DNA from: Laetmonice hystrix
Taxonomy: Eukaryota
DNA: 64,000 bases
Assembly (NCBI GenBank): GCA_965235115.1
Contig: OZ249440.1
Location: forward strand, 17,112,001-17,176,000
Reading direction: 5' to 3'
Shown piece by piece: positions 31,101 to 55,499 of this stretch. The translations under genes were made by a program, and so were the position numbers. Each line of letters starts with the position of its first letter. The stretch's first letter is position 1. The notes under the pieces are model-generated. The model was not told where the DNA came from. It made no database searches and was given only the letters and a program-made list of their open reading frames with translations.

Positions 31101-33299
31101 CTAGCCAGGCAGCTGAGATCCAAAGTTCTTCTCAGTCTGAAGGATTTTGAATGGCCCAGTCTTAAATCTAGAGACTAAGCACTAACCATTTGTACTGACT
31201 GCGATGATCGGGCATTCAGACTACATGGGCTAAACCTGCCATATAGATGCATCATTAGGATCATCTAGAAAAAAATACGCCAAATCTGAACTCGATTCTT
31301 TGAAGCTAATATATTGTAAGAGTTCTTGGAGGATAATGATATCATCATCTTCTGCTTCAGGACTATTTATATTTTTACGATTTATTATGTAGTGTGGAAA
31401 GCCTAGCCCTGTACATCAGAATTATCAGTCACACTTTTTAAAATCGTGGACGGCATTAGTTTGGTAATGATTAATTATGACCCGGTCGTAGACTACGAAC
31501 GATCTATTTCCACCTTGGAAGTAAATCAGACCAGTTAGGCCTACATGAAATTTGGAAGCAAACATTTATAAAGATAGTTGACCAATGACGGCTATTCATG
31601 GCAGCTCTTTAGATGTCATTATTTAAAAATGGAATGGCAACAAGTTCTGTTATTCCTTCTGAGAACTAATGAAGGCTGTTTGATAATTAGTCCTAGAAGT
31701 TTTGAAAAGTCCTAGAAGTTTTGAAAAAAATATGATTCATTAGTGAAGTCAAAACGGCAGAGGGCTCTTTGAGTAGTGTCATACAGGAATTGAATGAAAA
31801 TCAGGAAGAGTGGCCCAGTTTGCCCGGCATTTTGTATAAATTTATAAAGATCCAAATATAAAAGATATTTAATATGTACATGTAGCATAAGAAACTGACA
31901 GACCTATGTTTTCAAACGACGATTGGACATGCACGCCTTCTGAAGAATCATACATTGACAAAGTCAGTTTGCTGTTTTAATACTCGCTGTTAATGCAACT
32001 TACTAGACGGCAAATTTTAGTTAATTTAAAGCAATTTTGAAGGAAGCAGGGGAGGGGACGGGATGGTAGCGGCCGTGGTCCAGACCTTACAGTACAGTAG
32101 GCAGCAGTCCAGTTAATTCTTATGCCCTGGAAGTTGAACCTTTCCCCTGAGAGGTGTGACCGATGTGAATCTATTGAATTTATTGGAGCAACAGTCCCCC
32201 CTCCGTTTCGGCCGCCTGAAAGGCTGAGACTAGTGGTACGCTTGCTCCTAATGCCATGTAGGAGAATGGGGAAGGACTGGTCTGAGTGGCGTCAGTTGTG
32301 AGAGGTTCTCGGGACGGTGAAATGAGGCTCGGTCCTTCCTTCATTATGGGGATGGGGATGGGGGGGGGGGGGGGGGGTTAGGTCATCCATCACACGGCGC
32401 CGGCTCCCCTGTGACGGCGGTCCGTGTGGATCGGTCGACCGGTCGGTCAGAGCCGCTGACCGGCACTGGGTCGGCCGGACGCCGGGCCGGCCGGCCGGTG
32501 ACCTCGGTGAAGTCGTGGCCTGCAGGACGGCCTCGGGCCTTCCTTGCCTGCTGACTGCCACACTGAACACTGACATACATCCAACCAGAGCCGGACACTT
32601 ACTCCTCAAGTCATGTTTGTCCTGTGACCGCAGCTCTTCATCATCTATCAGTGGAGAGGTCTATCAGGAGAGGTCTACACAGTTTGGTTGGAGGCGAAGC
32701 TCCTTTTGGTAATATTCCAACAGTGTGTGTTGGGGAGGGTGGGGTGGGAACTGGAGGTCCTGCATTGTGATCAGAAGTCAGGGTGTAACTGGGTAAGGTG
32801 ATAAGTCAAGATGGTTTAACCATTGACCAAACGACATGAACTACACACAGTCCATGGGGTCGAAAGGTCAAAATCAAAAGGTCATGCCCCTCCTTGAGGT
32901 TGGCTATTTGTGACCAGGTAAAGTTTAAAACCAGATTGATAGGAGAGCACACGCTCTTGGGGGTCGGCACTCCAATTTGTGACTGCACCTTAAGAACTAA
33001 TAGATTTGAAGTTCGATAGTAAAGACGACAGAATCAGATTGGCTGATTTTTTAGGAAAAGCCAAAGGAAAAGAAATCCATGGTTTACGTGAAACATCGTA
33101 GAACTGAAGAACACCATACTTCCTTCTGAGGAGAAGCACCATCGAGAGTTATTGCGAGAGTTATTGCGGCATTTCCTTTCTTGCCAGGGGGCTTGACTTC
33201 AAAGAATCCATTAATAGGTCAATAATGGTGCTGCCAGGTAACTGGTACTTCAATGTAGGTACAGGAAATTAAGGAATCCATCGCTCAGGGGACAGGGAA

Positions 33300-34320
33300 A
33301 CATGTCTGATATAAAATTATTGTTCTGATAATGTTGATAATTATTGAAGTTTTAGAATACATCTGACTAACTTTATGACTACAGTGGTAGTCGTTTAAAT
33401 CAACTAATCTGTTGTGGTAATGAAAAAAAACATCAATTCGGCGGCGTTGAGTGGGGCACAGCAGTGGTCGAATATGTTAGCTTTCTTTAATTTTTTAATG
33501 CCGGCCTTTTCTTATCTTCACTCCAGTAGACCGATCACAAGCAATGTCTTGGCTGGTAGTGCAAAGAGTGTCCAGATCATCAGAAGGAATTACAAAAAAG
33601 TTTAGTCCTGGTGGTGTCATTGATCGTTCCCACCTGACTACAGTTTTCTTGGCACCATGGACCAGGATTTTAAGATCCTTAGCCGAGGAACTAGGTTTGA
33701 ACATGTTTGATTTTGAAGGGGAAATGAAGTCACTGAAAATTATAGATAAAATTATTTTGATCAGAATGAGGTCCACTGGCTAATGTCATTGAGGTCATCA
33801 GTCATGGCAGTGTTAGTACAAGGCTATATGTTGTAATTTGTAAATTGTTTCCAGGAGACTGGGGCAATGTTGAGGCCAGCTGTTCAGGTCAGTGAGTGAA
33901 GTTCTAAAGCTGTTCATGCTGTGAACAGAAAGGTATGCCAGTGGGGAGAGACGGAGAGAAAGGCAGATTGCCGGTCAGGTGGGGTCATGGAAGTAGGACA
34001 GCTTGCAGCGATTATCCTCAACCGAGCAGGTTCGGCATCTCCAGGCAACAAGAGCCCAACCCTGCCTGACCTTGCCTGCTCCCCTACACCTTGTCGAACT
34101 GGTGGGCTTACTTTTGTCCTTACCTATGCAGCATAGCGGCAACGGATATACAGTCAAGCCTGTGATCTTGTTCACACGGTAGCTCGACCCTAGAAATCTT
34201 GTGCCATCGAAACTGATTTTCAACCCAAAAGATGAACTTTGGTGTCCTCATATTTTGTAGAATAATAAGCAGCAGCCAGGCACCCAAAATTTTAATCTGA
34301 GGACTGGCCAAATGATGTGA
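33300..34320 (-). mobile_element. Decayed CR1/L2-like non-LTR retrotransposon 5' region
   Basis: Across frameshifts: hydrophobic start MASPQIKILGAWLLLIILQ, then LLLPGDAEP (2A-like remnant, 34028-34054), then PHD-like remnant RCKL...PAIC...HWH; many stops. Confidence 0.35.
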
Positions 34321-35899
34321 AGTCTGGACAGCTTTCTACCGACATTGGTAAAAAATCCAGAAGTAACCAAAGAACGTTATCAAGGTCATTCGAATTTTGA
34401 ACATTTTTTTAAAAACAAATCAGTCTGATTCAAGGGCATGTGAGGCAGGTTTACTGGCAGTGGACGGAATATCTATATTGAGGCAAGGTATATATATTTC
34501 TTAAGCCAACGGATCCAGTGGCCCAAACGGGATCATGTATGGGAAAGCTTTGGGAGATTGCAACAAATCTGAGGCCCTGGGACTAGCTATTATCGACGTC
34601 TGGTATAGCTAGATAACAGTACCGTTAAAAAGTCATGTTACCACACATGTATGTCTTATGTCCAATGGACTTCATTGTGTTAGGCACACACTGTCTATGG
34701 TTGTTGAGCCTCTCCCCCTCTTTGCGAATGCAGCAGCAGAACCCACTACTAGAACATGAACGGACTGCAAAATGTGTTTGCTTTGAACATCTTCCACCCT
34801 AGGCCTCTTTCTGTGTATGGCATGCTTTGAGCGTTGAATTACACACACCGCCACTGCGTGCCTTCACAGCAGCTGACTGGCATTACATCGCAGGTCGGCT
34901 CAATGTGGCGGCCCAGCAAAGCCTGTCGGAACTACACTGGAGATGACCTCTGCTGTGAGCAGGTGACCTTAGTGTGGCCTACATTTCCCTCACTACATGT
35001 CTGTTGTGTCACTGGTTTGTGTTGGTGTGTGTACCTGTTCCTTGCATGTGTGCAGCTGCAACGCCAACCTGCCTTTGACTGCCAGGGGTTCAGTGCATTA
35101 TGTACACCTGTGTTTGTAAAGTGCACATGCACTCCGTGATAGGAATGAATGCATAAAGCCAGGAATCCATGTGGGCGTGATAGGTAGTGCGTAATGCCAA
35201 CGTCAACCAAGTTGGAATGATTCCATGTGTGCGTAGTGCGTAAAGCCAGGAATCCAGGTGCGTCTTGCATAGTGCGTAATCAAAATAATGAAACCCCACA
35301 TTACACACTACGCTTGGATTCCTGTCTTTAGCGGTACTTATCTTCCCGTGTAACTAAATGGGAGGTGCAGGGCACTAGATCATGCTTTCGGTGCCGTCAG
35401 AGTATTGGAAAACCAGATGAGTTTAGGAGACTCAACTTTTCTAATTTTAAGATCGATTACATTTGGTTATCTTATAATAACGGGCAATTGATGCACATAT
35501 TTCTGTGTAGATTTGTTTGTGAAATCTTTGAGAAGTCCACTTTCATTTTAAGTTCTGTATACATATAAGACATGCCCTTATCCTTCAATAGTTTACTTGC
35601 TTGAGTTTCATTTCTAAAAACTAAAAGCTGGAATTGCTCTTCAAAGTATTTTATGGTCATTTGTATCGTTATTTATGCATCCATCTGTGATATATCTAAT
35701 ATCTCTGACATGATTTCGAGCTGTGCTGCTTTGCAAATTGGGAATGATTGAAGTCGATGTCTACTTCTAACTGATCATGACCAAGGTAATTATGGTCCTG
35801 ATTCTTACCACAGATATTGGGAATGTTATTTGGTGCCGGATGGATTTTCTAAGGCATATTAATCAGGGCAGTAGTAAGGTCAGATAAAGGTCGCGATGA

Positions 35900-36900
35900 G
35901 GGATGGTTTAGGGAGGTGGGTTGTTGGCTGACCCAACGACAGTAGTGATTTTACAATGCCCATTTAGATATACATTAACAGTGGGGGGGGGGGGGGTGCA
36001 GGTCGACCTAGGGTCTGGGGAGGTAATGGTAGGGCACTTGTGACAGCCTGGATACCAGAGGGCCTCATTAAAACAATCAGTCACTACACAAGCCTTTGTG
36101 GCTCCCACAAGAAGCCCTTTATGGCGCGGTGACCTTCCTAGTGATTGTGGCACCCGCTGGGAATAGTGATGGGCCTGTTAGAAACAGGGTAACTATTAGT
36201 GGTGGGTCATTTTAATGATATAGAAAATGTTGTCAGGTGACTGGGGCATTGTACCGTATAATAATAGGCTGAAGGGTTTCGGTACTTAGCGACCTTTCTG
36301 ACCATTTGTTCAAAGATTATAATTTTGAGTAGATAAAATAGATAGGCGAGGAAACTGGAATATAGTTTCAGATTTCTTAGCTCAGTCTGGTCAGTGTGGC
36401 GAAGAATTTCCTGGGACATACGGTGGTTTGGACTCAATGTGGTAAGGCATGTCTCGGGTTTGGCTTCACGTTGGTTATGTCTGGGGTAGCCTTTAGAAGG
36501 GTTCCTCCATGTGACAGGCCCTTTGTCAGTGTTGGACACGATCGTTGGTGTGAGTTGTGGGGAGGAAGGTTTAGTTTAATCTAGGTCACTGAGCACACTT
36601 GGCTGCCACCAACTCTACAACATTCCTGCGGTTATGCACTACTCTAAGGGTTTGCACAAAGAGTTTTCTTCTTGTATTCCCGCTTGAATTTTAAGTGGAG
36701 TTGTGGGGAGTTTGAGAGTGGCCAACAATATAGAGCCCTTTCCTGTGAGGTTAGATAATGAGAGATGGGTTGGGCACCAGGATTTCTCCCCCTTTTCTCT
36801 TGTTCCACTCAGGTTGAAAGCTTGTGGTGGTCCGTAGGGACTCATCGACCTGACTGCTTAGTGTGTCAAGAACAAGTTACGTCCTTGGGGAGAATAAAAA
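35900..36900 (-). mobile_element. Decayed I/Nimb/Jockey-like LINE relic (ORF1 zinc knuckles, endonuclease start)
   Basis: Frameshifted remnants GEILVPNPSLII..., VHNRRNVVELVAAKCAQ, CCRVGG...HQRSCP, ETCL and ITTVVGSANNPP resemble gag-like CCHC knuckles and APE motifs; heavily degenerate. Confidence 0.3.
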
Positions 36901-39900
36901 ATGGGAGGGATATTATCAGGAAGTCGTGTTAGTCATCAGATTCAGAGAATTTAACCAGTCTGGCTTGATTACATTTTAAAAGGATTTTTGCCCAGGGTTG
37001 ATTTAATTTGTTTCAGTCTATCTAGATCAATTTAAGGAGGCGAGGGGAGTAATTATCAAGGGTTCATCACAATAGTGGCTTGTACAACACGAAACCCCAA
37101 GGCACGGATCCAACTCATGACCTACAGTTTATTTCGCCAAGTCCAAGTTTTTTGGTGTATTTTTTCATGTTCCAGGTAGGGGTGTTAGTAGGTAGCTTGT
37201 CCTGACCACAAGTTGGACTTAGCTACGCTATGTAATAAGCTACCAGCCACAGTTTGCTGGGCTACCACTGTGACAAATGGGTGCAATATCCTGGCAACGG
37301 CGGCCGGCCCGCCCACACTGATCGGCCATTACTGGGGGCGTGTAAACTGTACAAATCATTTCTAGTTTCTACTGTGGGGCTGTGGCCGGCCACTGACTAT
37401 ACCCCACGGGTCGGCCAGGTGAGGGCTTGGTCTGACCCAGCTACCAACGGCAACCGGGGCAGATCTGATCTCAGTCGTAATGGTTAAGTTTATGTGCACC
37501 ATGAATCAGGAGTAGATAAAATATTAACTTTGTGTTCAAAGTGAAATGTTTTTGTCTCTCCGATATCTTCTTGCTGTAGTGTCAGAAAAAACGTCTTATT
37601 AACTTGTCAATATTGAATAAGATCATTATTAAAGGGAAACGACTGTTTCGTTTGATGGGCTCAGTTTACGGGTGCATTCACTTCCTCAGGATTGGTTTCA
37701 CACACTGTCGTTCAGAGATAAATGGCATCAGAAATGAATGGGGGTTATGTAAGAGGCTGGGTTTGGGAGATCCTAATGTCTGACATTAGAAGTGTGGCCA
37801 TCGCTCAGGTTGAACCCATTAGGGCCAAGGTCGGAGGGCCAGGGAGGTCAGCCCGAGTTAGAGAGGCTGCAGCTATTGAGGCCAGTGGTCTATGGGATGT
37901 TCACTTGAGGGATGGAGAGATGGGGACGATTTGACATTGAAGGACATCAGTCATCTGACTGAAGGGCGGCAGCTAGGGGGGGGGAGGGCGGATCCCCGTT
38001 TTAATCTGGGCACCCGGCGCTGGCCAGGAAGGGTCCGGCGGCCCCGGTATGCTCAGCGGCCGCCGCCTGTCCCAGTCGGGCGTGGGACCCTCGGCAGGGG
38101 TAGGTTGTGTGGGGTGTTGGGGAGGGGCGGGGGCTGAACTAGGAGATTGGATCCAGAACGTCCTGCAGTAAGAATCAATACACGAGCAGCAATTTTGTGC
38201 GGGAAATAATCTCAGAAAGAAAAGCTCCTTATCTTGTGTCCGCAATGCCCTGAGATGTTTGAGGACTGAGGAGTAGAATTAAAGGAGCTCTTGGCCTTGC
38301 TCGCCGGCCTACACGTTGTGAAATTACGGCTGCGGTAATGCGCGGTTTGATATTCTCATTAGGAAGTGAGTGGTGACTGACTGTCCTCCGTTTGACCCCG
38401 GTGTAAAATGGTATGCTTGTTCCCAGCCCATAACTTGTTGTCACGCTTTCGTATATAGTTTGAGGCGCTTTACAATCTGTAGTTCACATCATTTATAGTG
38501 GGCCTAATTTTATGTAAATTTGATTAGTGTTGAGCGTTTCCTTGAAGGCAGAATTGCCCTGCCCAAGGTATGTAGAAAGTCACAATTTACGGTAAACCAC
38601 GATTTACATAATTTTCAGATATTTTTTGCGCCCAAATCTACTTGCAATTAATAAATGTTTGAAATGAAAAGTTGGGAACACTGATTAAAAAGTTAAAAGT
38701 ACAACTGGAGCTTCCAACTGGTCCCAAGACGAAGCAATTTCAGCCTGATTAAAACGACAGTCCTAGATTTCCTTATGACAAACGTTGTTCCAACTCGCCC
38801 AGTAGAAATCCTACTGTTTTTAGTGTAGATTACTTTCAGAACCTGCAAGGGATATTATGTTGAAGAACCTACATGGTGAAAGACTGGTGAAAGTCGTGAT
38901 CCCAGTTTGTTCATGAATGCCTAGAATGCCCCCCCCCCCATTCCCCAGTGGACCGGCTGGGACGTCCTGGGCTGGGCTGCAAACACCTGGTTCTGGGACC
39001 GGGCGTGTTGGACTGTTGTGTTAGCCCGTGATAGGCCTGTATTAGCCTCAATTTAGGTTTGCTAAAGAGAGAAGGCGGGGGGGGGGGAGATTATCAGGAA
39101 GGGTTACCGTTAGGGTAAGCAGTGGTAGAATAGGCTAATCCCGGTGAGAGAGGTTGCCGACAATTTCCACCAGTCTGAGGATTGACCTAATGATTATAAC
39201 GGATGGATTAATGTATTTCTAACATCAGTGTTCCCACAGATGTCCGGGACCCGCGCTGTGATCTTTGGGTACCCACAGGCCACACATACACGTAACTGGG
39301 TGTTTATTAGTGAATAACGTCCGACATTATTTATTTGTGTGAGACGGATTGTGTTAACCTTGCGTCATCCTGGTAAGTGGGTAAACTCTGTGGGCCTCGG
39401 CTGTGCCAGCATACTCGCTGAGGTTCTGGGACAGCTGGCTGGGTTGTGGTTTGACTGGCTGAGCCCATGACCAATGTGCTAACTTTATGTCATCCTAGGG
39501 GGGAAATCTGGAGAAGACGAGAATAATTTGGGATAGTGTGCATGGCTCAATGGAACTGTTTATCTGCTACATTGTTAGGAGTGTGTTTGTGAACTTTGGA
39601 TGAGATGTGTTCTGGTTGATTGACAGGGTTGTCCAATAAATCGACACCCTTACAATCAGCTGGGAAACGTGGAGCCCTGTAACTGTTTAATCTGGGCAAC
39701 CGGGCAGTCATGTCAAATGGTGATCTCCAGTACAGCACCGAGTTTGATTGCCGAATAATGCACTGTTTGCACCAGGACGGCCCGTGTTGTGTTGTGGTGT
39801 ATGTAGGCGGAGGCGGAGACAGAAAGCAGGGTAATGAGGACTTGGTGAAGGATACATTGAGTACTCGCATGACAGACAACGATTAGCTGTGGATGTTGAG

Positions 39901-40570
39901 ACGGCTCGATGTTCAGGACCCCAGGCCAAGAATTATCAGGTCTCAGGTTGCCGGTGGGGTTTAAACTAATAATAAAAAGTAGTTAAAAACGGGGTGTGGG
40001 GGTGGAGGTTCAGTGCTGGTAACAAATTGTATTTTTTTCGTAGTGATTCCAAAGTGAGCCAAATTAAACCCAATCTTGATGACTTCTTTTTGATTGGTTC
40101 ACGCACAGGAGTTTGCGACACCGCACACTTGCTCACACACAGGCTGCTCCATTCCTAACGCTAAGGTTGAATTAAAATTAACACCAGCCGGGGTTCTCTT
40201 CCAGAAATGAGAGCCACAAAATACCGTAAGATTTGCATAGCTTCCATGTTTATCCTGCAGGGTACCCACTGAGAACCCTCTGGAACCGGCCTGGAGCAGG
40301 GCCTTGCCATGACAGACAGTGGAGAGAGTGAGGGTCTGCCAGCCAAAGTGTGCACACTATAGCTGGCTGGGGCAGGGAGAGGAGGGCCTACACTGTTCTC
40401 TGGCTGCATATAGAATACCTTATGAATGGCTAATACTGTAATAGTAGTAGTACAGCTTGGCGGGATGCTGTGCCGGGGGATGAGGGTCATTGTGGAGCCA
40501 GGTTCTCCTAAACGATCGACTCAGACGTCGTAATATAACTCCAGTCACAGCCATCGGCAAAGTAACATAC

Positions 40571-40670
40571 TTTAGTCCCAGTCACTGTAGTCCCACTTTA
40601 GTCCCAGTCACTGTAGTCCCACTTTAGTCCCACTCACTGTAGTCCCACTTTAGTCCCACTCACTGTAGTC
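40571..40670. repeat. 26-bp tandem repeat, about 4 units
   Basis: Unit TTTAGTCCCA(G/C)TCACTGTAGTCCCAC. Confidence 0.9.
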
Positions 40671-43240
40671 ACAGCAATCGTAGCTGTATCCAAAGTAGCT
40701 TACTAAGTCCAACGAGTATAGAATCTATACTCGTTGCTTAGTCTTACCATCATGATAACTATACCCAGTGATCGGAACTGAAGGTCCAGCCATCATATGT
40801 ACAGTCTCGGCCATCCTAACGGTAAGAATGACTACATTCTAGTCTCAGATGTCATCTAAATACACTATAGCGCCATCGTAACAAAAAAAGGCAACAACAG
40901 AAGGGCCGGGCCCAGCTGTAGATTCCCATGTTACTGGCCATTGTTACTGTAATCCCAGCAGCCCCCCCCCCCCCACCCCCACCAACATACCGTTGTCTCA
41001 GTTAATCGTTTAGCAGTCACTGAATACTCCCTCTGTATACTATACCGCGTGCTGGATGCCAACAGTAGCGCCACTGCTTTAGCAGAGATTGCTCGGCGGA
41101 CGATGCGATTATTGATTTAGCCGTGATAAGCTGAGTGACGGCAGAGCTAGTAAATGCTATTCACTTAGGAGCCATATCGAATTGTCGCATCAGATATAAT
41201 TTCCATAATGTGCGCACTGATTTCCCTTTGTTAGGGCACCGACCTGGTTGCGGGGGAGAAGTTCAAGTTAATATAACAAAGTTAGAGGCGGAAGCTATCA
41301 GTCAAGTTTGTGGAAGTGGCCAAGTTGCTGAAGTGACAGACAGGTGGCTGGTGGCATGGGGTTAGTGGCTGCACCGCCGAGGTTTAATAAGCCTTGGAAT
41401 GCTGGGTCCTCGATCTGGAGAGGAGAGGTCCACCGGGCTTGGAGGACATTTGAGTTAATCTTATCTGTTAGTGGCAGTGGTAATGAGGTCAGTGATATTG
41501 AGGTAGGTAACTAAATCTGTCTGGACCACTGAGGACATCTGCTGTCGTTCCCATAAACTGAGCTCTTTATTAGATCCGTCCACAGTCCCATTGTAAGGTA
41601 GTTGTTGTACAGGTATGTCTCGGTATATGTCAGTTAAATCGGGGGATGGCATCGTTCATGCAACGACCTGAGATCAGTCTTGATAGATTTATGGTGTACG
41701 TGAATACATTGAACACTGCAGATTCGTGTTATCTAGTTGTGTGTACGGAATAATGCATTGAACTTTATCGTGTACAATCAGTTCAGTTTGTCGGTCAGAT
41801 TGGACAACTTGATATCTGAAGGGTAATTTAGAATCACGGAAATACTAATGGAGAAGTACTGCGATGGCAAAGAATTTTGAAATAATCTGTCCGTCTATTG
41901 TCTGCTATTGTGGATCCACCTCTAAGGTCAGTCAGTATGTCCGTATTTCTGTTTTGACTATATAGGAATGTGGTTTAAGGGGACAATTGTTGAAAGGTAC
42001 GTTCAATCTTTATGGGATCATGCGGGTTCCATCAGACCTCCATGGCCAGTACAAACACAAACCGGGGATATTGTTAGGTGCAGGAACCTGGTGATCGCCT
42101 TCTAATCAACATCTCAGCTTACTGGCACTCAGCCTATTGCTATACCAACAGCTCTGGCCTAGGACCACCTGTAGATATTGAACTCACACATTTAATGTTG
42201 TCCCTGACCTACATCTGAACGTAAGGTGTGAAGGTGGTAGACCCTGGGGGGTGGGGGTGACACAAAACAAACACAGTCAGTTTACCTTGGATAGACCGCC
42301 CCCTTGTTATAACCTGACCACCTGGGCCACCCGTCACAGCCGGCAAATACAGGTACTGTGGTACGAGCCACAGGTAGGCCAAGTACTACCACCTACCCAA
42401 ACCTATCGCTAGTCTTCCAGAACACACTTGTTGTTTGTTAGCAGTGATATTTACTACTCCAGGGGACTCACTCACTCAGCCTCAGGACGGAATATAACGG
42501 CCTTCTCTTCTCGGAGGTCCCCACCCCCACCGACGGTCTCCCCTTCCCGGCACGTTCTGTAGGTAACAATGCGGCACGCCCAGTCCACACTTACCATACC
42601 TGAGCTCAGCTCCAGTTACCACGGCGGGTGTGGAGAAATGTCCGGAAATGCGGCTGGCGACCTCTTAATCTTAGAACATCAATTTTAAAGAAAGAGGGTG
42701 AACGGATATCAATTATGTGGATTTTCTTGCCCGGCATAGCATTTAGCAGAACATAATTATTGAGGATAATACCTGACACAATTATAGAGAAGTTGATGTT
42801 TGAGATATGTCACTGCCAGCCGTTAGTGGTTTCCCCACTGATTATAGTACTGCCCTACTGGTAGTAGGATCAGGACAGGTGTAAGAGGTAGTACGAACCT
42901 AACAACTGAAGAACACGCACCTTGTTTTTGAGGGGGAACTGGCCATTGTAATTTTGGATTGAACTATATCAGAGTTGTCTCCCTGCATCGTGTACCTTGG
43001 TCGGTGTGTAGCCTTAATTGTTACTATAGTATCCTGAGTTGAGAGTCAGTCCAGAACGTTGCGTAACCTTGGATGAACATCTATATATTACCGGGGTACA
43101 TATTGATCTCAAAGACACTCGCCTGGCTTGATGCACATTGTACAGACCTGAGCCGTTGGATTTGTGTACACGTGTTTCCGCACGCATTGTTGTCTGTAAC
43201 CCCTCTGGGTCTGCACACATGGCGGCAGAGTATCGAACGC

Positions 43241-43271
43241 TATTCTCTCCTTTGATCTGTTACAGGTAAGT
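43241..43271 (+). other. Candidate recursive splice site RS1 in KDM3 intron 1
   Basis: tattctctcctttgatctgttaCAG|GTAAGT: polypyrimidine tract and acceptor immediately followed by a consensus donor (junction 43265/43266). Confidence 0.5.
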
Positions 43272-46133
43272 TTCTGGTGTACGATTTACGGATCAGGCAG
43301 TAGGTAGCAGCGGTGTGACCTTGTCAGTGTTGCGGGGCTAAGGAAAATAAACTTGTCTTCTTTGAGCAGTCAGGAAAATGCCAGGTTCACAGCTCGATTT
43401 GTCATGATACTTGGCTTAACTTTTTATTGGCCGGCTGCCTGGGATAGGCAGTTCATGTACTAGTATAAGGGATTTAGTTGACAGATAGTACAAGGGCTGA
43501 CATTTAACATAAAATGCGCAGAGCTCAAATGTGCATAACATAACTATCGTATTAAATAATGCCCACATCTTGACACTGTCGTCTCGTAAAATATGTAGCC
43601 GTCTCAGAGTCTCGGATAAATTTGGTGAAAGTGCCAATTTTTTTTATAAGCTGTAAATCTGCGTGATATAAACATAATATGGTTGTTTAGGCACCTGGCC
43701 AACATCAATCATTAAATGTGTACGAGTGCAGCCAGTCCACTTCAGGTGTCACAGTAAATGTAGGCCACGCTCATACCTGTGAAAGTTCTTGCTGGCATGC
43801 CTAACCCGAGCCGCTGATCGAGTCACTGCTTTGGGTTCAGAGCCGCTTTGCATGGCAATCTGAAAAAGTTCAGTTCTGTGTTAGGTTATAGGCATTGTTA
43901 TTGCTATGACGGCATGTAAATATTTCCCACGGTGGGCGTTTTATTTGGACCTTTTCTTTGAGGAGGGCTTATTTGGCTTTGAAAGTCTAGATAAGGAAAT
44001 TTTGCTCCAAATTAGACTCTTTCACTTACCCATTGCTATCTCAGTTTTCAGGTTTAGACTCCAGGAATCAGAGAATTATTGCACTTGAACTTTGCATTCC
44101 TGTGGCAGGGCTGGGAAGGTTTCAAGCTGTCTCAGCATGGCAAGGGTGTAGCCTGCTGTAACAAGGGGACACATAAAAATGAACTATTGAACGGACAGCC
44201 TGCTGTGCAGGGGAAATTTATAACTGGATGTGGGTTGACAGGTGCAGTAAATATTGTCATATTACGGGTGGGCCAGGTCATGTTGATCTTCCATGCTGTT
44301 TCGTCAGCAGGTGTTCTTCCCGATTTTTGTAAACTTGGGCGGCCAGAAAAAGTCTCAAGTGTTTAATAATTTGGGTTTAATTTGTGTAAAGGCGTTGAAT
44401 CTCAAATCAGGACATAGAGGAAGCTTTTCCACAAGCCACACCGGGTGGAGATGATTACCTGTATATATTGGCAGTGGGGTGGGGTAGGGTCAGGGTTGTA
44501 AATTAGCCTGGTTTACTAGCAGTCATATCATAGGATCAGCGGGTGCATTTTCTAATGGCTGAGTGATCACAGGGGATGCAGCATGCGATCTACGCCTGCG
44601 CTGATGAACCCCAGGCCTCCGTATGTTGGAACTTGGTGTGGAGGGAGGCTGGGGACCCGGGGGGGGGGGGGGGGGTTGAACGTTTTTATGCGTGCTGCGT
44701 TTTAAACATGTCGGAGGCAATGCTCGGCCTGATTTACGGCATTCACACGGCAGCATCATGTCATGTTGTAGCTGGACGTTGATGTTAATCAAGGTGGGAC
44801 CTGCCAAACCGGGCCGCCAGGGGGAGGACGGAGCTAGCGTTATAATATATATGGTCCTCACACCGACTCTTGGTGAAATGGTCTAAAGATGCTTTACCCA
44901 AGGCTACTGTACCTGGGTTCTTTTAATTTAAAAGCTTATATGTGACTGCCAGTCAGAAGCGTTAAGAATAAGAGCGGATTTTTAACAAACCGGCGGGGCA
45001 CCTAGCATGACTTGACAACCGGACTTGGTGCTTGGGCAGGTGAAGTGGAGGACTATTGAGGCCATCCTCTGCCAGGTCCCTCAACCCATTCCAATTTTAT
45101 TCTTGTCTCACTTGGTTGCCATGGTGATGCCCACTACCAACATCCATTTGTTGTGAGGGGATGGGCGTGTTGGACCTGTAAATGGCCCTGCTTGCTTGGA
45201 GTGTGGGAGTAGGATGGGCTGAGGGAGGGGATGTTGGCATCACCATAGCCTCAACTTGCAGGTCGATGATCATTGATGGCGATCTTGTCAGTGGGTAATC
45301 TGATGGTCAGACGGGGTCAGGGGCAGCCCACGGTCAAGGTGATCTACAGGCCACATGAGTTATTAATGTTTCCAGAGCGGTGACCGGTGAGCGGTGACCG
45401 GATTTCGAGAAGGAGTGTTTTAAAGGTGCTATTCGTGAACAAAAATTCCATTTTTTTATTTTTAATTTTGTTGACGTTTATGTGATCCCGCCTATCATGG
45501 AAATAGATTCACAACAAAGGAAATCAAAATTTTTCATGGATAACGGCACAAATGGGGCTCTCTCAGAAGGCCTGTGGAGACCCTGACACGCCCCACCATA
45601 GGAAATGGCTCTATCTCGGTGCGCACCGAGATAGGTTTCAAATGCTGCACACAAACTAATAGAAGGTTTATCAGGCCAATGGTATCGGTAGGAATTTTTT
45701 CTAGTACTATGTGCACAATGTATGATAGGAGAAATGCCATTCTGTGCGAGACGAATAGCACCTTTAAGTTGTCTAACAGGTTTCTATGTTGTGGCGCTGT
45801 AGAGAAGACCAAAACATGAGTAAAAAATGTGTATACTATGGCATTTTATTAATCGTATGTACATGTACGTCGAGTGGTCAATCAATATTGTACCTCATTC
45901 AGACATGGTGAATTTGTTCTGGAGTGCCAGTGAACATGGGAAAGGCATTGCGGGAATTTTGAGAGGCTAGTTATGGCGCTGCTTAGTGACGTACTCGAGT
46001 CAGGCTACGGTTTAGGTGGTGGTTGTGGTGTAATGGTGGCCAGGCAGTCCCCGCCCAGCTAAGGAAGTTTTTATGGTTATGAAGGCAGGGGAGGAGAGGA
46101 AGGATTTGTTGGTGGACTAAGCTCTCTCGCATG

Positions 46134-46388
46134 GCGTGTTTGAGCATCCCACCTCATGTTGTGACCAGCGCTGTGTTTGAGCATCCCACCTCATGTTGTG
46201 ACCAGTGCCGTGTGTTTGAGCAGCCCACCTCAAGTTGTGACTGCTCAGCGTCGTGTGTTTGAGCATCCCACCTCATGTTTTGACCAGCGCCGTGTGTTTG
46301 AGCAGCCCACCTCAAATTGTGACTGTTCAGCGTCGTGTGTTTGAGCAGCCCACCTCATGTTGTGACCAGCGCCGTGTGTTTGAGCAAC
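46134..46388. repeat. Degenerate tandem repeat, unit 37-42 bp, about 6-7 units
   Basis: Recurring GTGTTTGAGCA(T/G)CCCACCTCATGTTGTGACCAGCGCCGT. Confidence 0.88.
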
Positions 46389-47259
46389 CCGTCCGAGATA
46401 TATCACCTTTATCTAGCCAGCAGGTCATCGGAATTGAATAAATCTGGCGGTAGGAGACCCCAGGCAGGGCGGGGGGGGGGGGGGGGGCGTGGGTTCCAGG
46501 GGGATGGGGGTGAGATCCCCTTGCTTCACTGAAGGGGACTTGAGCTGGAATAAATGCTCCACCCGGCTCATCTTCCAACCTCGCCATCCCTGGACGTGGA
46601 GGGGAGTGTGTGTGTGTGTGTGGGGGGGGGGGTAGTTTTATGAGTCTGGAGGGGGCAGCTCCAGCTCCCCCTTCCCCAATCCTAGAGCTAGCTTGGTCCT
46701 AGTACACCCCACCCACAACCTACCTCCAAAGATATTGTTACATCCCCCCACCCTGTGGGAGTTTGGCTCATGGACATCGGAACTCTACAACTCCCCGTGT
46801 GTCGTTTTGGACAGGTTTATGGCGGCCGGGAAGCGTAGATATATCAGACTTACAATAAAATAAGCTTTGAGGGGATATTTTCCTTACCGAATGGCTCAGG
46901 AGCAAATTACTTTCCTCCATGTGGTGAGCTCTCTTACAAAATATTTCCGACCACTGGGACTCCAAGGATTAATGTTAAGTTCAACCTAATAACGCAGTTT
47001 TTCGGTGTTAAGGTAGTTAATCTAAGGCTTTCTTCTAGAGTTTTAAGTTATTTATAGTTCACTTGTCCTGTGAGTGTCCATCGCACATTATGTGATAGGT
47101 GTTGTACAGAAAGAGCAGGTTTGATTTAAAGACACAAATTTCCAAGTATGTATTTCACACCGAGATATGATGCATATGGCCATGTTGCAATGCTTACGTA
47201 CGACTACTGTCCTGAGTGTAGCTGTAGGTGTAGAGAAAGTAACTGAATGATACCAGATG

Positions 47260-47870
47260 TAATATGAATAGAACATGTACCTCAAGTGTTTACACCTGTC
47301 CTTGCAGTGATCCTACACATAGAGTTCTTTATCATAGAATGTCGCAGACACATACTCCTTCGTGTGGGAGACGTGATCTAAGTCAGATTTTTCATTCAAG
47401 TCCACATGATCGTCAAGATGTTAGTGAGAACTGTTCACACGTGTGCCCCGCTGGCAGACATACCGTTACACAAGTCCCGTCACGCCTTCTTTACTGGAAG
47501 CTTACAAAAACTGCACGGACCCCTGGAGACGGTTAGCAAATTGCGTGGTACATGTACACAAGTTTCACTGCCAACACAAGAGTTCCCCTGTTGTCCCTCA
47601 GCTAAGCCGCCGCCCCTCCCTCCCAAAGAGTCACCAGAGAGTGTTATGGAGGACGGGTTGGATTCCAAGTCCTTTTGACACCTCGATCTCGGTGCACATG
47701 GGGGTCAGTGGACGAGGTTGGAGCCCGGCCATTGAGGAGGCAGCCTTTAGTGTTACTCGAGTGTCTAGACTGTGGTGCTGCTACCTCCTGCCACCGGAGG
47801 ATAATGGCATTCAGGAAGTGATCAACAGGAGTTTTGTTGACTCTAGAAAAGGCACACAGCCTTTATGACA
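47260..47870 (+). mobile_element. Possible decayed L1/Tx1-like ORF1 relic
   Basis: IFHSSPHDRQDVSENCSHVCPAGRHTVTQVP resembles eroded tandem CCHC knuckles. Confidence 0.2.
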
Positions 47871-48687
47871 GCCGGGCGTCCCGAGCAAACCACTTCACAT
47901 AGAATTTGCCAAATGATAGTGTTGCAGATTAATATTTTCTTTCACGTTGGATTCACAAGAAATCTCTTGTTCCAGCCATGATTGAAAACCTAGGAAACAT
48001 ACACAGCAGACAAACTGCAGATGAATTGAGTGCGGAAGTGTCTAGCCAGACCTTCCGGTAGATTTGGAGATTATATTTATACAGGATTTTTGTGTAAATT
48101 CCAGCCATAAATAAGACATTGTCCATGTTTCTTCAATAAATTCATACTGGATGATTTATACATAAGGCGTTGCCTAGTTGCTTTATTTACATGTTTTCCA
48201 GAGGTTTAGAAGCTCGAAGCCTCGAAAATAGAGATCCTCTCACAGCCATTGGTTAAGGTGCTTATTTATAAAAATGTTTGTATCTTTAAATAAAAAAGTA
48301 TGAACGTGATTGAAATGTGCTCGTTCTAGCCACCCTATACAGAGTGCCAGTTTGCGGTGGGTGTTCACTGAGTGCAGTGTCATCTGAGACATAGCTCACT
48401 GAGGCTGAGGATTGAGGGGTGGGTGGCGGTTGGGGGGGGGGGGGGGCAGGATCAGTCGTGTGATGTAGGGGGACTGAAAGGCGACATTAGACGGGCCCTT
48501 GATGGGTGACCCCTTTCAAGTTTCTGTCGGATTCAAGGAACTAGGCTGCACACTTTGTCTTCATCTATTTGGGAAGCACTGAGTCCTGGCAGCATGACAA
48601 CCAGCTCTCTACAACTGAGTAATGTGTCGGCGTCACCACGCCTGTTCACCGGCCTGATGTCATGTTGGGGAACAAGTTGCCAGGGGA

Positions 48688-48925
48688 GTGAACAGACTGG
48701 TCTGTCAGGAGAGTGAACAGGCTATCATGATGGTGAACAGTCTGTCAGGGGAGTGAACAGGCTGCCATAGCAGTGGACAGGCTGTCATGGTAAACAGGCT
48801 GCAAAGGGAGTGAACAGGCTGTCGTGGTGGTGAACAGGCTGTCGTGGTGGTGAACAGGCTGTCGTGGTGGTGAACAGGCTGTTGTGGTGGTGAGCAGGAT
48901 GTCAGGGGAGTGAACAGGCTGTCAT
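48688..48925. repeat. 20-bp degenerate tandem repeat
   Basis: Recurring GTGAACAGGCTGTCGTGGTG. Confidence 0.85.
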
Positions 48926-49677
48926 GGTGGGACTGAGATCCGCATACTCTACCCTCTGTCCAGTCTCGATCATCCAGACCCTCAGCGGCTCGTACAGCAA
49001 GAGAGTCGGGTGTGAAACTGCCCTCTGTAGAACTATACAACAAATTTAAATACCTCCACATAGCACAAACAAGTGCCTTACTTTTGTCTATACTGTATTA
49101 CACTATAATATAAGAGATTAGATAAGAGAAGATGTACTCTGACAGAGATTAGAAGTGGAAGTGGCTGCAAACGGCAACAGTGGTCTGATGGAACCTGACT
49201 ATCACTAGTATCAGGCTACAAATCGAGATCTCGTGACGGGACCCATTCATTATACGGCGAGCCCTACTCTGACCTCAGCCCGTATTAATAGGACCGGGCG
49301 GCCGTATAGTGCGGCTAATGCACTTATTGCCTGCTAGTTCTGGCCACCAGAAAATGATAGGGTGTTGTAATGTACCAGCAGTAAATAAAAGAGCGGATTT
49401 TTGTTAATGCTGACAAAGCAACTAAGGTGATTATCGGTTGTAACAGTTGTATTGTGACTGGCAGGAGTTCAATAGTTCTGCCTTTAGTGAGACGGGTTGG
49501 TGGGTGGAGATTGGGTACAATTACGGGCGTATATAGTGGGCCTCATTCCTGCTATATTAAATTCAAAGAGGCAAACACTTTACGATATTTTAGTCAGTGG
49601 TCGCCTTTAGGCTGCTTGATTTACAAACTGTTCACACGGTCAGATCTGATGATTTACAGACTGGAGGTGCCGCTTTA

Positions 49678-49975
49678 TGCCTGCCTCATACTACACGATT
49701 TTCTAATGATACAAGTATATGTGAGACAGAACAAGTTTTCAACATGTTGAAAGTTTTCTGTCATATGACAACCTGTCTTGTGTCGTAGACCAAAAATCGT
49801 GCTGTGAAAAATCCAAGAGAATCCGTGTATATCGGAGGAAATCGTGTGATACAAAGTTATCGTAGGAAATTGCAGGAAATCGTGGAGTGTGAGGACGCCT
49901 GTCATACAATTATACACAACAAAAATTTTGGCCTGATACATTCACAGTTCAAAATCATGTAGTGTGAGGCAGGCT
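49678..49975. mobile_element. PIF/Harbinger-type (Tourist-like) MITE
   Basis: TIRs (T)GCCTGCCTCATACTACACGATTTT and AAAATCATGTAGTGTGAGGCAGGCT; TTA TSD at 49675-49677 and 49976-49978; an internal degenerate TIR copy near 49880-49900. Confidence 0.82.
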
Positions 49976-51467
49976 TTAGAGTAAGAGGGACAAAGGCTGG
50001 ATTCATACTTCTTATTCCAGAAAATACGTATGTCAAAAGGATTACGTAAACTTCTATATTTGTTGATTTCGCTAGCAATCGATGGCTTTCATATTTTGGG
50101 ACGGACACTGCAGCGACTATAAGAAGCATCTTGCAATATTCAGATCTTTTCATGACAGCATTGTACCAGCGAATTCGAAAATCAAAAAACGTGTGTAACA
50201 TTAAAGGATGAAAACCCATTGTCACATGAATGAACCGAATTCATTTTGGTTTAAAATCAATTCAAGCAATGAAAAAAAACCCCAACAAATTCTGAAGTTC
50301 TGGCATTGCATTCTTGCCTTATCAGAGTTCCACACTTTTTAGCCCAAATCTAGGCGTCCTAGTTGTATTTCATCACTTGGTATTAACCGAAATGAATCCC
50401 CAAGTGAACGATGGAGATGATTGGTTACACCCCGATATAACGGTCAGATGGCGGTATGTGACAATATGAGAGCGGGTCAGGTGAGATTAACCCTGTGGTG
50501 GTCGTGGAGATCATGTGGATAAAACAATGGGTTGTGAACAGAGAAAGGTGGTGTGAGAACTCAATGAGAGCTGGTGATCTGGTCACGTCTCCTATAGTTC
50601 ACCGGGATGTGGGCACGGTAGGCCGTGGGATGAGGAAGGGGTCGGTCATCATGTTTACTGTACGTGTCGTCGTCTGTCTGTCCCTCCCGAGGGTGCTCCG
50701 AGCACTCCCAGCCCGACCAACCGACCGGCCCCCGAGTCGGACAGCCCGCAGTCGGTTGGTCACCGCTGGCCCTCCGACCTGGGCAATCTTGGTAGTGCGG
50801 GAGTTTTTCAATCAGAAAACTCTTCTTGGAATACAAATGACAAGGTCACATGGCCAGGACATCTCTAAAGACAAGTGGTGTACTTGAACTAAGTTGAAGG
50901 ACCCAAACCATTCTTTACCAGGCTACAATTTGTATTTCATAATTTGTTGCAACTACCGGTACAAAATTATGTCAAACAGTGACGATCGACTGTTTGTCTA
51001 TGTTTCCAGAGAACATGTCTTGCATTTGAAGTTCAGGTTGAAAGCTGTCAGATGTAACCGTTAACTGCACCTGTAATTGGTTCAATACTTTCTTTGCCTT
51101 ACATTATAAATCATTTATGTCATTAACCATACGTTTATGTATTATTCCACGTTTAAGTTAAAAATGTATTTATATGAAAGTTTTTTTAGGTAGATTTCCA
51201 TAGTTCCAGGAGGAATATTGAGTAATTACGACAATATGTAATGTTCACTGTGGACGGAAAATTCGACTCTTTCCCTTTTTTTTTTGCCGTTACCAGGGAA
51301 ATCATGTAGGAAGTTTGCTGATTCACAGGAACAATTAAACAAGTTAGCATGGACATATTTGATGTGTTCTTGAATCTGTTAAGTTCCTAGAAACCTGTCA
51401 ACATGTTACTTCCTTTCCTGTGATGAAGGCTGTGTAAACTTTGAAATGGCTGTTTTAATGTAATGAG

Positions 51468-51503
51468 TAACTAACCAGTAATCTGTTGTGTTTTCAGGTA
51501 AGT
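51468..51503 (+). other. Candidate recursive splice site RS2 in KDM3 intron 1
   Basis: aCTAACcagtaatctgttgtgttttCAG|GTAAGT: branch-point-like CTAAC, U-rich tract, acceptor and consensus donor (junction 51497/51498); downstream donor CAG|GTGAGG at 51585/51586. Confidence 0.55.
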
Positions 51504-52314
51504 TGACGTTTCCTACTATCGTCTAAAGGTGGTGTACGGGTCTGTACCAGGGACGGGCTGGAGTGGATCGTCTTGTCACTGACAGGTGAGGTGGGGAGAC
51601 TGGGTGATGGCAGTCTCCTGTTTGACGGCCTTTAATGGCATCATTATAGTGTCATTGTAACATCAGGCACAGATGTGACGGATAGAACATTATCTACTGC
51701 TATATTACAGTAGAAAGTTAATCTATTGTGTCAGGCGAAAGGAGAGTTGAGAAAGGTGTAGTGTTAAAGGCCCGGAGGCTGATTAAGACAATCTTCGAAG
51801 TGCCAGGCCCAGGTTACTCAGTAGGCAGGTCGCTCGTGGCAATTAACTATTTTTATGATGGTTGAAAAAGTTTGAAATGGCGAATTTCAAGGTGAACGGT
51901 GCATGGAGGCCAAAGATAAAATAGCTAATGAAGCTGCCATGTTTAGCTGATTTTCTCGTTGAAGACTTTTTGAGCACTGCCGGTGAGGTCTCTGAACTGA
52001 GTTTGTTTGGTTACCTTCCAGCCATTGCTGTCATGAATTTGAAGTTTTACTAAAGTCAAATGACTTAATATTGTGAAGTAATTTAGGTTAATTAAGAGGT
52101 GGGTTGGTTAGATGTGTACTCTCATTGTCGAGGTTGAGAATTTTATGCCTTAGTGTAGGAAGGTGAAACAATCGATACGAGGTGGCTGAGACCGTGATGT
52201 GAGAATTTAGTGGTACTGTGACTAAGTATTTCAGATTGTGTAATCGGTCAAGATAATGGCAAAGTTGACCATCCGTTTAGATCAATAGATGTGACAAAAT
52301 CATTGCAACAAATT

Positions 52315-52461
52315 CCACTCAGTGGATACATTCTCAAAGGCAAAATTAGCTACTTTCTATGCTCCACTCAGTGGATACATTCTCAAAGGCAAAATTAGCT
52401 ACTTTCTATGCTCCATTCAGTGGATACATTCTCAAAGGCAAAATTAGCTACTTTCTATGCT
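52315..52461. repeat. 49-bp tandem repeat, 3 units
   Basis: Unit CCACTCAGTGGATACATTCTCAAAGGCAAAATTAGCTACTTTCTATGCT. Confidence 0.95.
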
Positions 52462-52599
52462 ATGCTGTTGATTTAATCGTTTAAATGAAGATCTAAATAA
52501 ATACAAAATGTAACTTTATGTCAACAATATTTTACGAAGACCTTCAATCGTGCTTTTGGTGGTTTATATAAAAAGAGAAATCAGCTAAGGGGAGAGAGA

Positions 52600-53300
52600 T
52601 GGAGAAGAGGGGAGAATGCTCCTGGTTTTGCTTCCGTTTCCTTCTCGGTGGTGGCAGGTCGGGATGGTGGGGACAGGTTTGGTGTGATCAAGGTGTCACT
52701 CACTGATCAATGGCCGCTAGAGTTGGCGGGACATGCTCCTCCTGGTCCTAGACCTCTTCAAGGTCCGGCCGAACTGATGGCTTCACGCACCGTCTACCAA
52801 GGACACGTTCAATGGGAGAGAAATTCCTTGGGATGTTTTGACAACACTTGGGCACCGTGCCAAAAGTACAGTTGTTCTTGTAGTTGTTCCGCCGGCCGTG
52901 GCCATAAATGGGTTGTCGTCCTGTCCACACAACAAGTGTATTCTTTGTATTCTGTGCAGGGTTAGATCCTGGGCTGGGGGGGGGGGGGATTTACGAGGGT
53001 TTAAGTTTCCATATTGCAGCTCAGAGCTCCCACCGAAAAGTGTGCCGGAAGGAGAAGTCAGTTAGTGTAGAGGATGTCCGTACCTGGTGAATTGTTTGTG
53101 AAGTTGAGACGCAGGATGTTCAAACTCAATAAAGGCCTTGAAGATGTTGCCCAGAGCCAGCCAGGGTCCTTATCCCGCCTGTTGAGTGTGCCCCCCCCCC
53201 CCCCCCCATCGTCAGCTAGGTGGCCTCCCCTCCCTGTTCCTCTCCCCACCCCGTACCTCTTCCAATCTGTGCTGGCCGGGTACCGTACATATGTCCGTGT
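52600..53300 (-). mobile_element. Possible decayed I/Nimb-like ORF1 relic
   Basis: Remnants TRTTVLLARCPSVVK..., SHQFGRT, HLDHTKPVPTIPTCHH and AFIEFE resemble the RRM and zinc-knuckle region of LINE ORF1. Confidence 0.22.
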
Positions 53301-55499
53301 GTTAGCCAACATGTGTAATCAGATTGGTGATTTACTCGTGTTGAGGATGGAGATAACCAATCCAATCTGACCTCGATCTCGGCGAGTCCCGCCTGGCCTT
53401 ATCAGGACCTGCGGACGATGGGGGCTGAGTTATGGACTTTTTAAGTAAGCAGTGGCTCGGAGGGGGCAGACTACGGGTGGGTGGGGGTCAGACCTCCGGG
53501 ACCAGTGACACATGTGCAGATTGTGAGTGTACATGGAGACATCCTCCTCCAAACTGCTCCGTCATACGTCATACAAAGTAGCAGCATTCTTTAGATCACT
53601 ATCAGCTGTCGCCTCCACTCGGGTGTTACAATGAACAGGAGCGGAGATTGGCTGCAGGAAATTCTGTCCTTGCACAGAGGTATCCCATTCACGTTTTGCA
53701 TTGATTTTAGCGAAATTTGATACCTTCTGGTAAATATATCCTAGGAAATAGAAAATATAGGTTCAGTGGCTGTGAGTACAACACTCGCCGCTCATGTGGC
53801 CTAACCTTTTGCAGTTGATGATGGGAGCTCAGTTCTGTCTGTCGGTTGTCCTGTGCGCGCCTGTCTTTCTGTCCATCAATCTGTCAGACAATCCGGCCCT
53901 GTCATGTCAGGTCCCGGTGATGGTCTATGTGGAGGTGGTCCTCCGTTAGCCACATTTACTGGGGCATCCCCACAAACCTGTACCAGGGAGAGATATCCCC
54001 CTACTTTAATTGTGACATGATGAAAACTGTATTCACCTGGACGGATTGACATTGAAGACATGAAATGAGCGAAAGCCCTCTATTAAATGCCGAGTACAAA
54101 GTATTGTCGCCCCCTACAAGTTAGGGTAATAAGCCCCTAACTTCCCTTCATGAGTGACGTTGTCAAAGAGCTCCTCATGCTGTGTGATCTATTTAACGGG
54201 TGTTTGGACTCTGTGGTTTTGAAAAAAATACCACTAGACTATAGTCGCTGGAACCGGCCGGTCGCTGCATTCAATTACAGTGAGAAAGATGAGTCGATCC
54301 TATTGTAGGTATTTTCTAAAGGAGACACCTAATATGTGAGCCACAGGTAGAGAGTGGGTTTTTCCTCCGGTTGGCCGCTTAGCGTTGTAACTAAGCGACC
54401 AATGATCAGTCGGTGGGTGGCTGGCTGTGAGGGGTTGCCGTTGTAGGTCTGGCTGGCTGGGACCGATTCCCCAGTCCCTGGATCCCTGTGGGCCAGAGCC
54501 AGCTGTTGTGTTTGGCACGGAGCCAACCAAACTTTACTCCTTGTAATGGCAGCAGGCGAGGACCAGCATCATGACTGCAAATGGTCTGCTAAGGGCCAAC
54601 CACCATCAGATGGAGAATGTGGAACACCAAACTCCAAAGGATGGCCAAGGTCTCACTTAACTTCACCGACAGAAATAACCGGGCACACAACTTTTTTTGG
54701 CTTTATACCGATCATGATTTCTGTTTAAGGTCTGTTTCTCGATCTACAATCATTTAGAAGGTTACCATGTTTCCTCAGGCATTTCGGAAGTTTCCTAGTT
54801 ATACCTTCTTGAATCATGAGCTGTTTCCAGACCTACAGAGAATCTGAAGTCTGAAGTGTAATATCAGTGCTTGAAAACATGAAAACATTGTGGTTGTTGT
54901 TTATAAATGACTAACAAAACCTGTTCAGGTTCTAATTACACATGTCAGAACCGCTAACCATGACATTCACAATTACAGTGATTCAACATCACTAGAGAAT
55001 ATTTGTACATGTATTGTCCTCTGCTCTATAAAGAGAAAAGAAGTCCGCGTGATTTAGAGTTCTGCATTTATTACAAATTACAAAAAGTACATTGATGATT
55101 GATTATGAAGGATGCTTTCTGTATGTTACCAATTAACTCAGATGTGGAGCCGTATGTAGTGTAGAGTATATTAGTTGTGGCAGACAGGAGCGCAGACTTG
55201 TCGCCAGACTGTCTGTTAATAGCCCCGGCTATATTATCTTTGTAAGGACATATTTTGTACCATGTTATCACGTCACTCATCAAGTATCGATTGCAGTCTC
55301 TCTGGATGAATGACAGGTACCGAAAGCGAGAGATGCTTTAGGTAAGCTAGGGTAAGGGTAGAACGTTGTGTCTTATTCGGACTGAATTTATAGGCGCAAG
55401 CAAGAAAAGTTAATACGATACCGCTTATACCAGTATCATGGTATAATATTGGTCTATAATATTAGAAAGACATGGACAAACGTAGACTTAAAGGAGAAG

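Follow-up and report, generated by a model that had tools for sequence, protein, structure and literature searches.

A predicted series of fly-type recursive splice sites in the 64-kb first intron of KDM3 in the spiralian Laetmonice hystrix

The stretch of DNA analyzed here, referred to as the window, comprises 64,000 nt of the Laetmonice hystrix genome (G000:C5:17112001-17176000). A further 160 kb located 3' of the window was added, and positions in this added part are given in "window-extended" coordinates, which continue the numbering of the window. The plus strand of the region encodes KDM3. A JmjC match was found 172 kb beyond exon 1, and orthologs were retrieved with the JmjC-region exon that lies just 5' of this match and were mapped exon by exon on the plus strand. 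One of these, P0113, aligns to the later exons and possesses PWWP_KDM3B, Tudor_KDM3B, and JmjC domains. The exon-by-exon mapping and the domains of P0113 together identify the gene as KDM3.

The coding part of KDM3 exon 1 (28041..28196, plus strand) is composed of 52 codons, starting with the ATG at 28041 and ending in phase 0. Over 28041-28199, it shares 62% identity with residues 1-53 of the ortholog P0010 (tblastn). The exon ends at its native donor, TCG|GTAAGA (28197..28202, plus strand), which has an approximate donor score of 3.18. Exon 2 (VLVEFDDCEW...) begins at window-extended position 92532, after ...ttattccag, and residues 49-121 of P0010 align to 92520-92765 on the plus strand. The peptide across the junction of the two exons is ...HRDLA|VLVEFDD in P0010 and ...HPDIS|VLVEFDD here. 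Because the ortholog joins the exon 1 peptide directly to exon 2, there is no coding sequence between the two exons. With both exons fixed by homology, KDM3 intron 1 extends from 28197 to 92531 in window-extended coordinates (G000:C5:17140197-17204531, plus strand) and is therefore 64,335 nt long; the part within the window is 28197..64000. The acceptor of exon 2 reads CAG|GTACTG (92529-92537). This true, constitutive exon thus also starts with GT directly behind the AG, where it weakly resembles a donor.

In this genome, REEP and KDM3 exon 1 are arranged head to head. At the locus of P0113 (GCA_030686945.2), the annotated KDM3 range covers 144 kb and encloses a REEP (TB2_DP1_HVA22) gene on the opposite strand. 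The N-terminus of P0113 differs over ~96 residues, owing either to an alternative first exon located further upstream or to an error in the gene model. Inside the KDM3 gene, at window-extended 165090-176199 on the plus strand, there are three very long open frames of 532, 1002, and 1008 aa. The 1008 aa frame matches residues 369-712 of the ortholog P0013 and is probably a large KDM3 exon, and the frames of 532 and 1002 aa may be transposon ORFs.

The site of interest, RS1, occupies 43241-43271. A preliminary description of this DNA had reported a pyrimidine-rich tract and CAG abutting a perfect GTAAGT donor, 15 kb into KDM3 intron 1, and both the motif and its placing are borne out. ctattctctcctttgatctgtta and the CAG that follows it run to 43265, GTAAGT follows on the plus strand, and position 43266 is 15,069 nt into the intron, counted from the end of exon 1 at 28196. 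The polypyrimidine tract (43241..43262, plus strand) contains 17 pyrimidines among its 22 nt, with TT at -6/-5. The acceptor CAG (43263..43265, plus strand) is followed without a gap by the donor GTAAGT (43266..43271, plus strand), and the sequence before the donor reads gTTaCAG. Pyrimidines make up 77% of positions -25..-4, a level reached by only 2% of the YAG sites in intron 1. Upstream of the acceptor is an AG-free zone, with the nearest AG ~36 nt off.

In the current fly model, a cryptic RS-exon of ~50 nt begins at the ratchet point; this exon is always skipped, and its recognition depends on a weaker donor of its own located downstream (PMC8605326). No good donor, scoring above 3, was found within 200 nt downstream of RS1. 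The sole candidate cryptic RS-exon is 38 nt long (43266..43303, plus strand) and is of low confidence; it ends at the weak TAG|GTAGCA at +38, which scores below 0 with the approximate matrix. A canonical branch-point motif is absent at the usual distance from RS1, and a TTGAT is located only 11 nt upstream. The want of an RS-exon donor appears to be the main anatomical weakness of RS1, and the want of a branch-point motif the second. The preliminary description had termed RS1 a zero-length exon. The current fly model calls for a cryptic RS-exon with a downstream donor, which is unconvincing at RS1. DNA read contigs from three runs of one sample (~35-50x) have no variant in 43241-43271, which is uninformative on constraint because stretches of 300-800 bp without any variant are frequent in the vicinity. 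No Rfam families were found in 28000-64000.

RS1 is one of four sites of this type on the sense strand of intron 1. Numbered by the first base of the GT, these are RS1 at 43266 (GTAAGT; pyrimidine fraction 0.77 at -25..-4), RS2 at 51498 (GTAAGT; 0.59, U/G-rich, with CTAAC upstream), RS3 at 70076 (C5:17182076; GTAAGT; 0.77), and RS4 at 80917 (C5:17192917; GTGAGT; 0.73, with CTGAC upstream), all on the plus strand. In all four, positions -6/-5 are TT and position -3 is C, so that every sense-strand YAG|GTRAGT site in intron 1 conforms to the consensus published for the fly, TTNCAG|GTRAGT. No fly-consensus site is present on the antisense strand of the intron, where the core YAG|GTRAGT is matched only once, with 27% pyrimidines upstream. 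The element at RS2 (51476..51503, plus strand) is composed of a branch-point-like CTAAC, a U/G-rich tract, and TTTTCAG|GTAAGT. RS2 also has a candidate RS-exon of 88 nt (51498..51585, plus strand), with a good donor, CAG|GTGAGG, at +88 and a stop in its third codon. The four sites cut intron 1 into segments of 15.1, 8.2, 18.6, 10.8, and 11.6 kb, which is a more even spacing than that of four random cuts (P = 0.035 for the maximum segment and P = 0.013 for the standard deviation).

Repeat origin of the motif was considered and is ruled out, with the flanks of RS1-RS4 all being single-copy. The 500-750 bp around each site match only themselves in the genome, and a repeat control, a stretch that enters a high-copy repeat at ~45.4 kb, returned 251 candidates. 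None of the seven ORFs beside RS1-RS4 was found in the protein collection. The repeat entered by the control, at 45300-45900 of the window, is dispersed and of very high copy number; the contig word depth there is 200,000-700,000, compared to ~50 elsewhere, and the repeat edge at ~45410-45450 matches hundreds of places across all contigs. A further ratchet-like site is located on the plus strand at window-extended 184710 (G000:C5:17296710). It reads ...ctctttgatcgcctttaCCAG|GTGAGT, with 73% pyrimidines and no TT at -6/-5, and lies roughly mid-way in one of the later KDM3 introns, which is ~17.5 kb long and is flanked by exons at ~176.1 and ~193.8 kb.

When read from exon 1 in phase 0, the sequence behind RS1 reaches a stop after 13 codons, and the sequence behind the other three sites does so after 2, 13, and 23 codons. 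Due to these early stops, none of the four can be a coding cassette. Alternatively, 43265/43266 might be an ordinary 3' splice site, and an exon starting with GTAAGT might sometimes be included, with degradation of the resulting transcripts as a form of regulated unproductive splicing. Such a poison exon would be in keeping with the stop reached at RS1 on read-through and with the frame shift that a 38-nt exon would cause, and exons bearing RS features do enter the mRNA of vertebrates and of some fly genes (PMC8605326). However, there is no good donor within 200 nt of RS1 to end the exon, and the ortholog protein joins exon 1 straight to exon 2. Moreover, the GTAAGT with which the exon would start is far stronger and should outcompete a downstream donor (PMC8605326). 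A cassette or poison exon at RS1 is thus rather improbable.

CAG|GTAAGT is also an ideal donor for the end of an exon, and RS1 could be read as the 3' end of an internal alternative first exon. An intronic promoter would then start transcripts at ~43.0-43.2 kb, and these would be spliced from 43265 to exon 2. The preliminary description had offered this alternative, and it is disfavored here: there is no ATG in frame with exon 2, and the CpG o/e is 0.63, compared to 0.97. The frame that continues into exon 2 has a stop, with no ATG between this stop and 43265. The sole ATG nearby, at 43219, is in good context but out of frame, and translation from it meets a stop inside exon 2, which itself has no methionine. 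The CpG o/e at RS1 is 0.63-0.67, which is to be compared with an intron median of 0.58 and with 0.97 at the real REEP/KDM3 promoter. The models P0028 and P0113 of relatives differ from exon 1 at the N-terminus, so alternative 5' exons may exist in the gene family. Nevertheless, a pyrimidine tract and TT-N-CAG before the donor would be useless at the end of a first exon, yet they are present at all four sites. The chance that RS1 closes an alternative first exon is judged to be slight.

Another alternative to a recursive splice site is that the juxtaposition of acceptor and donor at 43266 arose by chance and is unused, or that any use amounts to no more than rare splicing noise. Two copies of the 9-mer CAGGTAAGT are present in the window, at 43263 and 51495, and each is on the plus strand. 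The preliminary description had argued from an expected 0.14 copies per 36 kb of one strand. This value holds if all bases are equally frequent; at the actual composition, the expectation is ~0.2, and the count is not significant. Markov models that use the real composition give 0.30-0.42 copies per 64.3 kb of one strand. In dinucleotide shuffles of the whole window, counted on both strands, the mean was 0.73, and at least two copies were reached in 15 of 100 shuffles, so the bare 9-mer count is not beyond chance and falls within the expectation for the window. The YAG|GTRAGT core alone is marginal on the sense strand of intron 1, with four sites seen and 1.2-1.6 expected (P = 0.03-0.08).

The composite of acceptor features and donor, joined by two further sites of the same intron outside the window, is beyond chance. 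A conditional test took as given that the sense strand of intron 1 has 30 GTRAGT hexamers, which allows for any general excess of donor-like motifs. The probability that a random intron 1 position lies behind YAG and at least 72% pyrimidines is 0.0014. At this threshold of at least 72%, three sites were seen and 0.042 expected (P = 1.1e-5); at a threshold of at least 59%, four were seen and 0.27 expected (P = 1.5e-4). The genome can also serve as its own reference. The fly-consensus motif TTNCAGGTRAGT is found 1169 times genome-wide on both strands, which predicts 0.060 occurrences for the sense strand of intron 1, where four are seen (P(>=4) = 5e-7). Once multiplied by 19,500, the number of 64-kb strand windows that make up the genome, this probability becomes 0.01.

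These values weigh against chance as an account of the series, since four fly-consensus sites on one strand of one intron stand against 0.06 expected, the antisense strand has no such site, and the spacing is even. In addition, two of the four sites were found only after the hypothesis had been formed: the idea came from the window, and 70076 and 80917 are both located beyond it, which makes them an independent test rather than part of the discovery. The excess holds for the series, whereas RS1 taken alone is not significant genome-wide. A site of RS1 grade (CAGGTAAGT with a pyrimidine tract of at least 77%) is expected ~0.008 times per such intron and more than 100 times in the genome, the latter being estimated as 6974 9-mers x ~0.02. 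Chance also draws on the missing RS-exon donor and the lack of a clear branch point at RS1, and on the strictest tract patterns described below, which are no commoner than their reversed controls. Overall, a chance origin of RS1 is unlikely, though it deserves to be taken seriously. The recursive-splicing reading given in the preliminary description is the one best supported by the sequence statistics (four fly-consensus sites compared to 0.06 expected), while the 9-mer count on which it had leaned is insignificant by itself.

Donor-like motifs may also have a function that does not involve splicing. Strong motifs of this kind might be kept on the sense strand of the long intron as decoys that attract U1 snRNP, and thereby prevent cleavage and polyadenylation from occurring too early, while remaining unspliced. 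The five copies of AGGTAAGT in intron 1, all of them on the sense strand, accord with such a role, and two of the five (68215 and 85526, plus strand) have no acceptor features, being preceded by AAG and GAG with no tract. This skew may reflect a general sense-strand excess of U1-type sites. Decoys would leave unexplained why four of the six AG|GTRAGT sites lie behind YAG, TT at -6/-5, and a pyrimidine tract, and any surplus of donors is already accounted for in the conditional test. As an account of RS1, U1 binding is given almost no weight.

The reading preferred here is that RS1 is a predicted fly-type intronic recursive splice site, or ratchet point, the first of four in KDM3 intron 1; the probability of this is put at about 0.65. 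That the four-site series as a whole reflects real recursive splice sites is held with greater confidence and is regarded as likely. Since RS1 is one of four same-strand sites, intron 1 is probably removed in steps, as long introns are in flies. The steps described here, including the use of the sites by the spliceosome, their order, and any branch point, are predictions from the DNA. The exon 1 donor, original or recreated, would be the upstream partner in each recursive step. During transcription, the native donor (28196|GTAAGA) would be spliced to the RS1 acceptor, ...TTACAG| (43265), and this first step would free 15,069 nt as a lariat. The junction of exon 1 and RS1 would recreate a donor, TCG|GTAAGT, and the sequence across this junction would read ...ATATTTCG|GTAAGTTT. 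With an approximate matrix that was not trained on this species, the predicted TCG|GTAAGT scores 4.83, compared to 3.18 for the native TCG|GTAAGA, which suggests that joining exon 1 to RS1 would regenerate a donor at least as strong as the native one. The recreated donor would then be spliced to RS2 (51497/51498), and the same process would be repeated at 70076 and at 80917 before exon 2 (92532) is joined. Intron 1 would leave as five pieces, and no sequence of the sites would be kept in the mRNA.

The motif class was also counted across the genome. TTNCAGGTRAGT was found 1169 times and its reversed control 710 times, an excess of ~460, and YYYYNYAGGTAAGT was found 743 times, compared to 708 for its reversed control. 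The strictest patterns, composed of eight pyrimidines, N, and YAG followed by GTAAGT or by GTGAGT, have no excess genome-wide; ~70 and ~50 matches were counted, compared to 64 and 44 for the reversed controls, after removal of satellite arrays that were identified by eye. Because these patterns are no commoner than reversed controls, many or most single sites of such shape are the product of chance. Among strict-tract sites within 75 kb of each other, there are six same-strand pairs and no opposite-strand pairs, with 0.88 expected of each (P = 3e-4). Strict-pattern matches at C5:27.97 Mb (two matches) and C20:8.78 Mb were set aside as copies of a single repeat. For TTNCAGGTRAGT on contig 1, pairs within 35 kb number six on the same strand and none on opposite strands; within 75 kb, the counts are eight and four, which is not significant.

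Two same-strand triples of ratchet-type sites were observed in this survey. The first (G000:C3:8365605, 8391795, and 8421763, plus strand), which is among the strict-tract groupings, is composed of textbook sites with unrelated sequences, located 26 and 30 kb apart, and every site has a second donor 33-52 nt downstream. The second (G000:C1:15934599, 15962320, and 15989691, minus strand) has a spacing of 27.7 and 27.4 kb. Repetitive DNA also contains the motif. A tandem array at G000:C1:26798520-26827524 (minus strand), with a period of ~4.1 kb, carries TTACAGGTGAGT in each unit, and satellites at C1:19.017 Mb, C12:26.31 Mb, and C4:33.497 Mb likewise bear a tract with YAGGTRAGT. Satellites of this kind inflated the genome-wide motif counts. 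That fly-type ratchet-point splicing, in which a long intron has several evenly spaced (Y)n-TT-N-CAG|GTRAGT sites, is not confined to insects and is widespread in this spiralian genome, with some hundreds of sites, is given roughly even odds. If such widespread use is true, then the mechanism and the grammar of its sites are at least as old as the protostome ancestor.

Experimental demonstrations of recursive splicing come from flies and from vertebrates. A literature search returned no article that links it to annelids or molluscs, as the co-mentions retrieved were only incidental, so that the mechanism, if validated here, would be extended to a group of animals in which it is new. The KDM3 series may thus represent a known mechanism in an animal group for which no report was found. 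If the reading is true, fly-type ratchet points extend to Spiralia, which helps to date the origin of the mechanism. In addition, the series sits in KDM3, which is a housekeeping chromatin gene and not a neuronal giant gene. For genome annotation, the series is a warning that sites of this kind are not to be called exons or promoters.

Zero-nucleotide recursive splicing is known in Drosophila from genes such as Ubx, kuz, osp, and luna (Burnette 2005, Duff 2015, Joseph 2018, Pai 2018). Like the Drosophila ratchet points, the KDM3 sites juxtapose (Y)n-TT-N-CAG and GTAAGT on the sense strand of a long intron, here of 64 kb. TT is found at -5/-6 in 196 of 197 fly ratchet points (99.5%), compared to 44% of ordinary fly introns (Duff et al., 10.1101/006163). 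Recursive introns in the fly are 11-133 kb long and have 1-6 sites each, which divide them into segments of 2.6-63.6 kb with a mean of 18 kb; among fly introns that exceed the minimum recursive size, only ~6% undergo recursive splicing (Duff et al., 10.1101/006163). KDM3 intron 1 likewise has several sites, four in number, and its segments of 8-19 kb are within the fly range. The cryptic RS-exons of the fly carry early in-frame stops or shift the frame (PMC8605326), and the sequence behind the KDM3 sites is similarly out of frame or stopped, with nothing retained in the ortholog protein. Unlike the fly cases, the host is not an insect, and RS1 is without a clear cryptic RS-exon of ~50 nt, although RS2 has a good donor at +88. 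In flies, weakening of the GTAAGT leads to obligatory inclusion of the cryptic exon. Moreover, the fly set was defined by conservation and by RNA intermediates, whereas the sites in KDM3 are predicted from the DNA sequence.

A second comparison is with poison or cassette exons that begin with a strong 5' splice site motif. RS1 resembles these in having a candidate acceptor followed by sequence that stops translation, and differs from them in having no downstream donor that would delimit an exon. In vertebrates, recursive splice sites are few, are mostly found in long neuronal genes, and depend on a recognizable RS-exon and on donor competition (Sibley 2015; Blazquez 2018). The KDM3 sites share with vertebrate RS-exon splicing an AG|GURAGU in a very long first intron, where the donor would be regenerated after the first step. 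They depart from it in that RS1 has no recognizable RS-exon, and the presence of four evenly spaced sites in a single intron is the fly pattern and not the vertebrate one.
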